Source: Stylophora pistillata (lineage: Eukaryota). Taken from it: 64,000 nucleotides of DNA. The position numbers and the translations under genes are program-made. The notes under the pieces were generated by a model, which made no database searches, had not been told where the DNA came from, and saw nothing but the letters and a program-made list of their open reading frames with translations. Below, one piece after another: positions 49,959-53,060 of the stretch (position 1 is its first letter; every line of letters starts with the position of its first letter). Location: the NCBI RefSeq assembly GCF_002571385.2, contig NW_019217913.1:52035-116034 (forward strand). The letters are read 5' to 3'.

Positions 49959-52900
49959 CTCTTGTGAGTGAACAACTCAGAATTTTTAGAGTCCTTAGGC
50001 ACCAAGTCTACTTACACCCTCAAACTAACAAGATCATAATATAAATTATTCTGACAGTCCGCCATATCTTTGACTAGTTTTTTTACAGGGAATTTATTTA
50101 ATAAAAATATCCTTAAAATAACATTTTTCTTCACCCTCAACCTTCTTTGTTACACAATGCACTGGTATTGTGAGGAGAAATTGTCTACTGGTCACTTGAG
50201 GGCAAAAAAGGGTTTAAGAGTACGGATTTCTTGTTGGTTTCTGCAAGACAACACTTGTCTGTAACAATACGCCTAATATGAAGTTAGGCAGATGTTTGAG
50301 CCATCTGTGTGGTTCTGGGGCTTGAAAGAACAGTATAAACCAAGAAGAAACTGGATCTCCACAAACACCATTCAAGAGATTGCTCTAAACTTCCTGTTTG
50401 GTGACAGTAACATCTTCCTGTGGTTTTATTTTCTGTAACCTGTGTGCCTAGCACTGAGAAAAGGAAAAGGAATTAGGTAAAGAAGAACACATTATGCAGT
50501 TCATTCTGTGAAATAAAACAAGGAAAGATTTCTGTAGAGAAAAGGATAAAAAAAATTGTCAGTGTTTGAATTTTAAAACATTTTCATCTCTTTATCTAGA
50601 ATAGAAGTTGCTCAGCCATAAATGTAACTGATTATCCAAAACAGTTTTAGCTTGCAATGCTGACATAGCAACCTAGCATATTCACCCAAAGCTATCTATA
50701 ATTGCAAGCTTCATGTGCACGCAAGAAATGCCTAATGCATTCCAATCAAAGGAATTTCTATTAATTGAACAAGTCGAGGTTGGTATACATTAGAACAGGC
50801 CTCACCTGTTCTTATGTCAGAGAACAGCTTAACTCTGGAAACTTCACCACTTGTTGGAGTCCACTGGCATGCCTGTTGATGAGGCCAACGGGAATAATGT
50901 TATCTGTTACATATCTAAGCAAACTGTCACACAGAACAAAGAAAACTGTTAAACACAATACATCTCTCTCATAAAAATGCTAGAAAATTTACAGATGTGC
51001 CAAGAGGTTTGGAACATAAGTTTTCACACATGCATTATTGAATACTGATATAAGTCATGGAAATTTTACTGCCTTGCTTAAGTATGAAAATGTGTCATCT
51101 TGGTAATTAATCTTTAGATGTCATATAATGTTATTAAGGAAGTCATTAGCTAGTGAGTGCGGACCTTAGGTGAGTCAAGAAATAAATTTCCTTAAGATAA
51201 CTTACAGGCTTCCACACTTAAATTTGAACACATTCTAAAAACACACACATTTTATACTCACAATATTCTTTGACCAACACACAGATGTACTTACAGTGTT
51301 CTCACTCATATTCCCACACCACCTTAACAATCTAATGCCACACTGCAGCCATTCTGTGTACCCTCTGCAACCCTTTGAAACTCACAAGATCGCTCTTCAT
51401 CCTAAAGATGACACTCTGCATTTGCATCTCCTTGACCCCATAGAGTCTCTGCATGGCTATCACAGAAAGTCATAGCATTCACTTCTTCTTGAGTTACATT
51501 CCACTCTTAGCTTTCATATCACGATGAACACATAACAGAACAATGTATCAAACACAGAATCACACATACATTCTCAATTTCCCTCTCTTCTGGACTTAAT
51601 GTATTTGTTCTTTCTTAGGTAAACCAGTGAGCAATGGGTTGCACAATCCTCACATGAAATAAATTGTTTGAACCCACAAGTAATACTCAATCAAGTAGCA
51701 TGATCATCTTAGTAAGGGAAGTCTTGAAAAAGAACTGCCATTCTTTATAGAAACTGTTATTTTGACAACACGAGTCCACATCACCTCATGAAGACAACAC
51801 TGCTGAGATAGAAGTCACTGCTGCCAAAAACAATTTTCCCTACACTCTTACAATCTCACTGCACAATAAAAACTCTCTGATTTCTTTGATTGCACTGTCA
51901 GCTATTCCTTCATTTCAGTTTTTTGCCACACTATTCCAACACCACTTCTCAGTCAAATTGCTTAGAATAAATGCCATTCATGTGCCCTGTCCCAATTTCA
52001 ACAAAAAATAATTCCAGTGTTAGTTTCCATGCCACTCAAATTCCCTGATATACTACATTAGCACAGACCATGCATATTATACTGAACAATTTCCCACACA
52101 CATCCAGGTCATTTATTTCGCTTTCTTGTCATTCCTTCAAGACAATTTTACGATGATGACAAAGTTAAGAATGAAGCAATATGCAATATGATTATACAAT
52201 ATGCAAAAACTAAGTTCACTATTTGGACCCCTACGGTGTTCAGGTTGTGTTCAACTCTTAAATTTAATGGTAATGCAAAGACAAAATGAAAATATCTAAG
52301 CAGTACAATTCATTACACTCATAGAGATCAGATGGCTACACATGCACCCTTACATAACACAGCACTCTCACCCATCCAAAGTATTTGAAACAATGTTTCC
52401 TCAATAATGTAAACAGTAGAATTCACTCCTCATTCACTTGACATTTCTTCACCCTTACTAATAAAAGCAAAGTTCTTTCCAGTCTCACTGTGCTTTTTGA
52501 GTAAAATTTACAGCTGCAGTGCTTTTTGAGTTGAATTCGTAGCTGCAATGCTGATAACAAAGGTACTTTAACTTAAAATGATTTCAAATTATGATAAAAA
52601 AAGCCATGACATATGTGTAAATGTATATAACATAAGAGAAAGAGGTGGTCCCTATGACACTCTTGGTTTACTTCCACCTGATAAAAATCTACCGTTTGAA
52701 GAAAGAAATTCACTTTGAATACTCAACTTTCTTTCTTTAGCAAATTTTTACTTAATAAAAAACCACCTTGTATCAATTTTTATTTGAGAAAAATATTACA
52801 GAATGATACTGTACCAACTGATGGAGTAGTAATTCTCATGCACCAATACCGTTTCCTTAGGAAAAACTAGTGTCAGTTCAACTATAATCTAACAAAGTCT

Positions 52901-53060
52901 GCCTTATGATATAACTTATTTACACACTGCAAACAATAAATTTATTATTGCAGTGAAATAACAAGTCATCATATGCTAGCTTTTACAACTGGAGGAATGT
53001 TTGAAAATTGTATGAAGTACCACAATCCAGAAAACAGAGACACAATCCTACCCTGGATAT

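Follow-up and report, generated by a model that had tools for sequence, protein, structure and literature searches.

Can a reef coral limit the amount of its own TDP-43 through the 3' untranslated region (3'UTR) of the TDP-43 mRNA, as has been described for humans? In the human gene TARDBP, intron 7 is normally silent; binding of TDP-43 within it suppresses the polyadenylation site pA1, which this intron contains, and the spliced or distal isoforms that arise undergo degradation or retention (PMC3950720; PMC4937342; PMC12987623). The question is raised by a stretch of 64,000 nucleotides (nt) of Stylophora pistillata DNA (contig NW_019217913.1 of assembly GCF_002571385.2, positions 52,035 to 116,034; "the window" in the following), in which the TDP-43 gene is followed by a region with several splice sites, AATAAA signals and TG-rich sequence. 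A preliminary description, made from the sequence of the window, had proposed an ancient autoregulatory module, and every motif that it listed was found at its position. In the literature searched, there was no mention of TDP-43 autoregulation in cnidarians in this sense. The architecture is established by public RNA data: the 3'UTR of the coral gene is alternatively spliced and alternatively polyadenylated. It may represent a multi-isoform dosage switch, with TDP-43 itself limiting its own productive mRNA, and we assign a probability of about one half to this reading.

Isoforms of the coral TDP-43 3'UTR

The identity of the gene is clear. A TDP-43 orthologue is encoded on the minus strand at 53061-56148 of the window. 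Its first coding exon matches the Pfam domain TDP-43_N (6e-29), and three further exons contain the two RNA recognition motifs (RRMs; Pfam RRM_1). The 349-amino-acid protein of the gene, P0031, is a database record that bears the NCBI name TAR DNA-binding protein 43-like of Stylophora pistillata, and it matches human TDP-43 with an E value of 6.5e-74. The ribonucleoprotein (RNP) motifs LIVLGLPW and GFGFV are kept, and F229 is changed to I. Transcript contigs that encode P0031 match the window with 99.5-100% identity. The stop codon, TAA, occupies 53063-53061, and the acceptor of the last coding exon, at 53540, was read from RNA joints. The gene is TDP-43, with conserved RNA-binding RRMs.

More than 20 public sequencing runs contain 84-93% of the sampled words of 50300-53531, and seven are declared poly(A)+ RNA libraries. 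The stretch 49960-55000 was covered by one stranded run of raw reads (X24) and by contigs from three poly(A)+ runs of three other studies, with two coding introns as positive controls for the detection of joints. The isoform set consists of the ten Logan contigs that encode P0031, with isoforms drawn from six different runs. The elements of the 3' region are as follows:

53061..53540, minus strand: last TDP-43 coding exon (RRM2 and Gly/Met/Asn-rich tail), from Pfam RRM_1 and from contigs L013-L022, which encode P0031
53045..53052, minus strand: donor A, G/GTAGGAT, cut at 53052/53051, 9 nt past the stop codon, from RNA joints
50873..53051, minus strand: intron A, optional, 2179 nt, removed in contig L015, retained in L013 and in contigs of runs X4 and X6
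52551..53051, minus strand: intron A', 501 nt, from donor A to an acceptor AG at 52552-52551, from the single contig L014
52088..52117, minus strand: proximal poly(A) site, with AATAAA at 52117-52112, UGUGUGUG at 52102-52095 and cleavage at about 52092-52090
51200..52500, minus strand: UG- and G-rich tract, from composition and over-representation of 5-mers
51279..51420, minus strand: conserved 5' splice-site island, about 110 nt, with a profile score of 75 bits
50806..50872, minus strand: small non-coding exon, 67 nt, from L015 and joints, separate only upon removal of intron A
50454..50805, minus strand: intron B, 352 nt, CAG/GTGAGG ... ttttctcag/T, with a joint in four of four runs and in L013, L014 and L015
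49935..50453, minus strand: distal terminal exon, from joints and from contigs that reach at least 49935

Does the RNA over this region belong to TDP-43? The RNA and the splice sites might stem from a different transcript, e.g., the convergent succinate dehydrogenase B gene (SDHB) or an antisense RNA. SDHB is located downstream on the plus strand, a few plus-strand reads were found at 49960-50466, and one Acropora contig merges SDHB and TDP-43. However, the X24 reads across the 3'UTR have the same orientation as the reads of the coding exons, and the opposite strand is essentially empty over 50805-53000. Contigs of X4 and X6 link the coding exons 54831-55000, 54214-54352 and 53540 onwards to the unbroken sequence 53540..50806, and single contigs connect the TDP-43 coding exons with each UTR isoform. 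All joints are of the GT..AG type on the minus strand. An unrelated transcript or an antisense RNA is ruled out by the stranded reads and by the contigs that tie UTR to coding sequence, and the probability of this explanation is negligible. As had been assumed, the region is the 3' region of TDP-43, with overlying RNA on the strand of the gene that is physically joined to its coding exons; splice sites belonging to another transcript, which had been named as the finding that would speak against the module, were not encountered.

Two non-coding GT..AG joints on the minus strand, representing introns A and B, were found across the four runs. Intron A starts at donor A, which departs from the consensus at +4 and +6 (GTAGGA matches 6 of 11 consensus positions). 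In X24, seven reads with three different starts span its joint, from 53051 to 50873, versus about 25-30 reads that pass the donor unspliced. One contig of run X10 also has this joint, with a depth of 23 versus 71. Intron A is retained in most molecules, and its removal generates a minority isoform. The 3'UTR thus contains an intron that is optional, has non-consensus splice sites and mostly stays in the RNA, and the donor G/GTAGGA that had been noticed just behind the stop codon is a used one (X24, the X10 contig, L014 and L015). In L014, donor A is joined instead to the acceptor at 52552-52551, the transcript reads on, and intron B is spliced. A 29-nt tandem repeat (2.2 copies, 82% matches) is located at 52490-52552, directly 3' of the L014 acceptor at 52551.

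The used acceptor of intron A, an AG at 50874-50873, lies inside the cassette exon that had been proposed at 50923-50806, and therefore the small exon comprises 50872-50806; the donor of the proposed exon, CAG/GTGAGG at 50806/50805, is indeed used. From this donor intron B is removed. Within intron B the depth is 0-18 compared to 70-190 in its flanks, and therefore nearly every molecule that extends this far has lost it. Of three stacked acceptors that had been described, only that at 50454 serves intron B, and no use of those at 50532 and 50506 was seen in the four runs and ten contigs. The same data contain no joint at the three strong donors of the preliminary description (GTAAGT at 51294, GTGAGT at 51261 and GTAAGT at 51205), where X24 reaches a depth of 8-16 in the distal half of intron A, so that use below about 15% would escape detection.

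The 3' ends follow an equally clear pattern. Seven of the ten P0031 contigs end at 52090-52103, and in L016, L017 and L020 untemplated runs of 11, 25 and 23 A residues directly follow ...GAAATAAATGACCTGGATGTGTGTGGG. Because contigs end, with A tails, at about 52090, the AATAAA at 52117-52112 is the signal of a much-used proximal poly(A) site that is cleaved 22 nt past the hexamer. The depth of X24 falls about threefold at this site. The 3'UTR of the proximal isoform has a length of about 970 nt and is free of introns. UGUGUGUG, a UG run, is located between the used hexamer and its cleavage site. Among the other AATAAA signals that had been listed, no transcript end was found at 52941 or 52779 in the four runs and ten contigs, and the one at 50425 is ruled out as a transcript end, as contigs extend to at least 49935.

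Intron A (53051-50873) encloses the much-used proximal poly(A) site, as well as the UG- and G-rich tract and the 5' splice-site island. Removal of intron A therefore deletes the proximal poly(A) site together with the whole UG-rich body. Read-through transcripts extend 2.2 kb and nearly always lack intron B. The long form is represented by L013, which consists of the coding sequence, 53540..50806 and then 50453..49935, and the short form by L015, from which introns A and B have both been removed. The junction of intron B lies 2255 nt past the stop codon in the long form, 1754 nt in the A' form and 76 nt in the short form, which carries junctions 9 and 76 nt past the stop. Altogether, there are three classes of TDP-43 mRNA, namely a proximal form without a junction past the stop codon, a long read-through form that includes the island, and a short form. 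Their shares can be given only roughly, because k-mer depth estimates were inconsistent. Spliced as well as alternatively polyadenylated UTR isoforms, which the preliminary description had suggested looking for, are both present, and the opposite outcome, with all transcripts ending at the proximal site and no spliced isoforms, did not occur.

The distal terminal exon contains ATTAAATAAA at 50101-50092. An (ATA)14 microsatellite is located at 49913-49955, in or just past this exon, and some contigs run into it. It caused the public contig L015 to be chimeric, and it probably breaks assemblies and thereby hides the distal poly(A) site. The tail of L015 does not extend the terminal exon. Its sequence past the (ATA)n repeat maps to another genome contig, which identifies it as a chimera that arose through this repeat during assembly.

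Conservation among reef corals

Are these splice sites more than processing noise? A long UTR might be spliced at random, the choice of poly(A) sites might be neutral, and conserved motifs might have a role outside RNA processing. In favor of this explanation, the removal of intron A is a minority event (two of four runs, one of ten contigs), A' was found in a single contig, and the donors of the island were never seen spliced. Orthologous loci, fetched via the protein sequence of the last exon, bear on this point. They comprise genomic DNA of five other corals, transcripts of three more, and Nematostella, while no record was found of the Exaiptasia locus; the last-exon proteins are 70-89% identical to that of Stylophora. 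One of the genomic corals is an Acropora, to which Acropora palmata-type transcripts map at 99.6%.

In BLAST comparisons between coral 3'UTRs, sequences could be aligned only in the first 40-60 nt past the stop codon and in the island. GGTA(G/T)GA is invariant in nine of nine coral taxa, 8-11 nt past the stop, although the stop codon (TAA, TGA or TAG) and the spacer in front of the motif vary among them. The conserved motif is donor A, i.e., the donor that is used in Stylophora RNA. About 20 nt past it, and thus about 20 nt into intron A (53020-53045 and orthologues), a second small conserved motif is found, U(U/G)UGGAUUA, which has the exact form TGTGGATTA in four coral taxa and one changed base in a fifth. 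Donor A itself contains UAGG. UAGG is the core of silencer sites of the heterogeneous nuclear ribonucleoprotein (hnRNP) A/B type. Both U(U/G)UGGAUUA and the UAGG of the donor could be binding sites of a regulator.

In Acropora and a third species, contigs L027 and L031 stop precisely at the ...GGT of the donor. This is the expected branch point of an assembly, because spliced and unspliced forms diverge there. A candidate acceptor in Acropora, ttgttag/GTGGATCC, about 80 nt before the next donor, fits the break point of L027 and L031. A 26-nt piece of the predicted Acropora small exon had no match in metagenome_contigs, and in a second acroporid ten of ten contigs were unspliced at the stop-adjacent donor. 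Splicing of the intron A type in Acropora is thus a candidate with indirect support from contig break points. The downstream intron is directly visible: an intron of 115 nt (L003 12595-12709), located 2108 nt past the stop codon, is spliced in all four long Acropora contigs (L023-L026) and parallels intron B of Stylophora.

The second conserved element, the island, is located 1.5-3.2 kb past the stop codon in the coral orthologues. The Stylophora island contains cttGTGAGTttca...gcagaggg (G at 51385) as well as GAGTGAG..CACTGTAAGTACAT (G at 51294). The only 10-mers common to at least five of seven coral UTRs all fall in CACTGTAAGTACAT. CTGTAAGTA is invariant in eight taxa, AGTGAGTGAGTCAAG precedes it, and GGTGTGAGTTTCAG..GCAGAGGG is found about 100 nt upstream. 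All conserved motifs of the island are consensus 5' splice sites, including the GTAAGT at 51294, and when seven taxa are combined, enrichment is highest for the 5-mer GTGAG and second highest for GTGTG. In spite of this, the island is unspliced in long transcripts of Stylophora, Acropora and a third species, and no joint begins in it in any run or contig examined. CTGTAAGTAC and GTGAGT are retained in contigs from polyadenylated RNA of Stylophora (L013, L014), Acropora (L023-L026) and in L028-L029. In Stylophora the island is present only in read-through RNA, because it is located beyond the proximal poly(A) site; poly(A) hexamers precede it in each orthologue, and their use is known for Stylophora.

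Donor A and the island are conserved across reef corals of both major clades. With regard to the conservation across anthozoans that had been named as a check, the donor was found in nine and the island in eight coral taxa, and neither of them in Nematostella. In the Nematostella locus, the stop-adjacent GGTAGGA was not found, the island profile had no match at E values up to 10, and a lone TGTAAGTATG at +869 could be due to chance (about 0.05-0.08). The pre-bilaterian origin that had been suggested is unsupported, as donor A and the island were not found in Nematostella.

Processing noise is improbable because of this conservation. Donor A is invariant in nine taxa amid surroundings that changed freely, and it is the site that is used in RNA. 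In addition, contigs of two further species break exactly at the donor, splicing of the intron B type about 2.1 kb past the stop recurs in Acropora, and the region of 2.7 kb is single-copy amid repeat-rich DNA. The latter had been noticed as a near-absence of repeats, and in agreement with this, the 2.66-kb region matches only itself in the genome, while an element in a neighbouring intron has more than 2000 candidate copies. The junctions exceed chance: they were read directly from RNA, and two motifs are kept across coral UTRs that otherwise cannot be aligned.

Candidate sensors and comparison with TARDBP

If the switch is regulated, what is its sensor? TDP-43 is the likeliest candidate for blocking the proximal site. 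It would bind at UGUGUGUG and in the UG/GAAUG-rich tract, and the block would be analogous to that of pA1 and intron 7 in human TARDBP. Transcripts either end at the proximal site at about 52090 or read through to the distal terminal exon and lose intron B. The proximal mRNA would be the productive isoform, and read-through would be penalized twice, namely by a junction of the type that triggers nonsense-mediated decay (NMD) and, in the long form, by intact 5' splice-site motifs. A junction more than 50-55 nt past the stop codon marks an mRNA for NMD, a criterion that has been applied to TARDBP (PMC4937342), and intact 5' splice-site motifs in mature mRNA lead to nuclear retention and decay via U1-70K and ZFC3H1 in human cells (PMC9074902). 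Each read-through isoform is a candidate for NMD, because its intron B junction is more than 50 nt past the stop codon (2255, 1754 or 76 nt). Blocking of the proximal site would therefore be expected to lower protein output.

The sequence composition is partly in agreement with TDP-43 as the sensor. On the transcript strand, TG dinucleotides occupy 0.11-0.13 of the positions over 52500-51250, compared to about 0.065 elsewhere, and G is about twice as frequent as C. The TG-rich tract is therefore real and wider than the extent first given for it (51230-51345). The top over-represented 5-mers in the tract versus the rest of the window are TGTGT (13 versus 1.8 expected), GTGTG (10 versus 1.2) and GAATG (9 versus 1.2). 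All three are core TDP-43 motifs. With a predefined set of 20 TDP-43 6-mers from individual-nucleotide crosslinking and immunoprecipitation (iCLIP; PMC12586162), Stylophora intron A contains 47 sites versus 29.8 +/- 6.9 in dinucleotide-preserving shuffles, a modest excess (z 2.5). This corresponds to 21.5 per kb versus a background of 5.8 per kb (3.7x), and the antisense strand contains only 14. The UG/GAAUG enrichment is clear only in Stylophora.

The layout resembles that of human and mouse TARDBP with its TDP-43 binding region (TDPBR), intron 7 and the sites pA1, pA2 and pA4. The genes are orthologous, and in both cases the last exon contains several optional introns and several poly(A) sites. 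In both, the most-used proximal poly(A) site is located inside a mostly retained intron with non-consensus splice sites, removal of the intron deletes this site and forces distal ends, the distal or spliced isoforms satisfy the junction rule of NMD, and UG/GAAUG-type motifs, in the coral a candidate binding region, are found in the optional intron. There are also differences. The coral donor is located 9 nt past the stop codon, whereas the donor of human intron 7 is further downstream (mutation at cDNA 1921-1922; PMC4937342). Only the coral gene has a downstream intron that is nearly always spliced, and therefore every read-through transcript carries a junction, and an island of consensus 5' splice-site motifs that is conserved yet unspliced is likewise peculiar to it. 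In turn, a counterpart of the coding-region donor of human intron 6 was not seen in Stylophora RNA. The coral UTR thus has the structural hallmarks of the TARDBP module, and the likeness that was found is one of layout. Shared descent with the vertebrate module found no support in Nematostella, where it was sought by sequence comparison.

Two other systems are similar in part. The unproductive-splicing autoregulation of serine/arginine-rich (SR) proteins and hnRNPs shares with the coral gene the conserved non-coding splice sites, the junctions past the stop codon, and a conservation that is confined to splice signals and binding motifs. However, the main switch in the coral appears to be the choice of poly(A) sites together with 3'UTR intron retention, whereas that of the SR/hnRNP type is a poison cassette exon with a premature stop. 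The retention pathway of U1-70K and ZFC3H1/PAXT (PMC9074902) has a parallel in the long coral isoform, which keeps three to four consensus 5' splice-site motifs. The retained, unspliced and conserved motifs are GTGAGT, GAGTGAGT and CTGTAAGTAC, and the proximal isoform ends upstream of them. So far, only human cells and fission yeast are known to have this pathway, and the motifs of the coral island could instead be donors of short-lived isoforms.

Several points weigh against TDP-43 as the sensor and against a rapid decay of the distal isoforms. The tract for the 5-mer test was picked after its composition had been seen. With the same set of iCLIP 6-mers, the eight further coral loci and the Nematostella locus are unremarkable (z -1.3 to 1.7), the 6-mers being no more frequent than in the shuffles at eight of these nine loci, and a long (UG)n repeat was found at none of the loci examined. 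The distal path is not a rare one: 15 reads represent the intron B joint versus nine for each of the coding joints, and the k-mer depth of the distal exon equals or exceeds that of the coding sequence in poly(A)+ runs. This abundance sits poorly with fast decay, though 3' bias could explain it. As the conserved motifs resemble U1 sites, regulation could lie with the general machinery of splicing and polyadenylation. Stylophora is the only species in which transcripts were shown to end at the proximal poly(A) site, the NMD junction rule is an assumption for cnidarians, and the binding of TDP-43 and the dose feedback in the coral are predicted from the layout.

Some of these points are in favor of a second explanation, which retains a conserved and regulated switch and replaces the sensor. 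The latter would be the U1 small nuclear ribonucleoprotein (U1 snRNP) and the polyadenylation machinery, or other RNA-binding proteins, for example of the hnRNP A/B type acting on the UAGG of the donor, and the switch would tune output, localization or stability according to tissue or state. Conservation is strongest in 5' splice-site motifs (GTGAGT, CTGTAAGTAC) and in GGUAGGA, and not in UG runs, and most corals lack an enrichment of TDP-43 6-mers. The steady-state abundance of distal isoforms points the same way, as does the fact that retention is known to be signaled by intact 5' splice-site motifs independently of TDP-43 (PMC9074902). In contrast, a different sensor leaves aside the strand-specific UG/GAAUG excess in Stylophora (47 sense versus 14 antisense, 3.7x background) and the position of UGUGUGUG exactly between the hexamer and the cleavage site of a used poly(A) site. 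In addition, the orthologous human gene regulates itself by the same logic, and the RNA-contacting RNP motifs of the protein are conserved. A sensor other than TDP-43 is possible, and we consider it tentatively as the chief alternative. The dosage switch operated by TDP-43 remains our preferred reading. The most detailed version of it, with TDP-43 blocking the proximal site and thereby feeding a decay-prone distal path, in which the downstream intron is spliced and the island would act as a U1-dependent retention tag, is rather unlikely to be correct in every part.

Gene neighborhood and biological meaning

The surroundings of the gene yielded several further observations. SDHB adjoins TDP-43 at 42600-47965 of the window (plus strand), at L003 14431-17809 and at L042 2704-8162. 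The two genes are convergent in Stylophora and Acropora. The Acropora contigs L023 and L024 pass from the distal TDP-43 UTR straight into SDHB exons, and therefore the 3' ends of the two Acropora genes probably overlap. In Nematostella the order SH2/PID gene, SDHB, TDP-43 is kept, with SDHB on the same strand as TDP-43.

In the public Nematostella gene model P0029 (291 amino acids; L042 13225-15345), the last coding exon contains an internal GT donor that follows ...AWGG. This donor is located about 200 nt before the stop codon of the long frame and is joined to a strong acceptor about 1.9 kb past that stop, and the predicted join yields the short new tail IIVQNH. The predicted product resembles the human isoforms without the low-complexity domain (intron 6 type). 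A second RRM2-like exon is found in Nematostella about 7 kb downstream of the gene (L042 20745-20996), and one coral has two TDP-43_N exons 13 kb apart (L012 5102-5353 and 18079-18330), a possible tandem duplicate.

The TDP-43 introns contain an interspersed repeat of about 305 bp with an internal inverted repeat, similar to a miniature inverted-repeat transposable element, at 54420-54730 and also at 53847-54015. On first look it has more than 2000 candidate copies in the genome, of which the best are 89-94% identical. In each of the four RNA runs, reads or contigs with loose ends accumulate over it, reaching summed depths of 10^3-10^4, and therefore its copies seem to be carried by many transcripts. 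Known RNA families were not found within 48000-57000.

What would the coral switch mean? Loss of the dosage control of TDP-43 is central to amyotrophic lateral sclerosis as well as frontotemporal dementia, and the mechanism of the human 3'UTR switch is still debated, both as to NMD or nuclear retention and as to the choice of poly(A) sites or splicing. Here a second, deeply diverged lineage shares the overall logic while nearly all of the primary sequence differs, and this separates the essential from the incidental parts. Apparently essential are a proximal poly(A) site in an optional intron, junctions past the stop codon, and retained splice-site motifs. The island is a specific element that can be mutated, with candidate roles as a retention tag, as a suppressor of polyadenylation, or as a donor of short-lived isoforms, and if the proposed mechanism is true, it would represent a new, portable "read-through penalty" element. 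The self-regulating coral 3'UTR would then work like the human one while being built differently, and TDP-43 feedback through the 3'UTR would either be ancestral to cnidarians and bilaterians or be a case of striking convergence. The age of TDP-43 autoregulation thereby becomes a concrete experimental question in cnidarian models.

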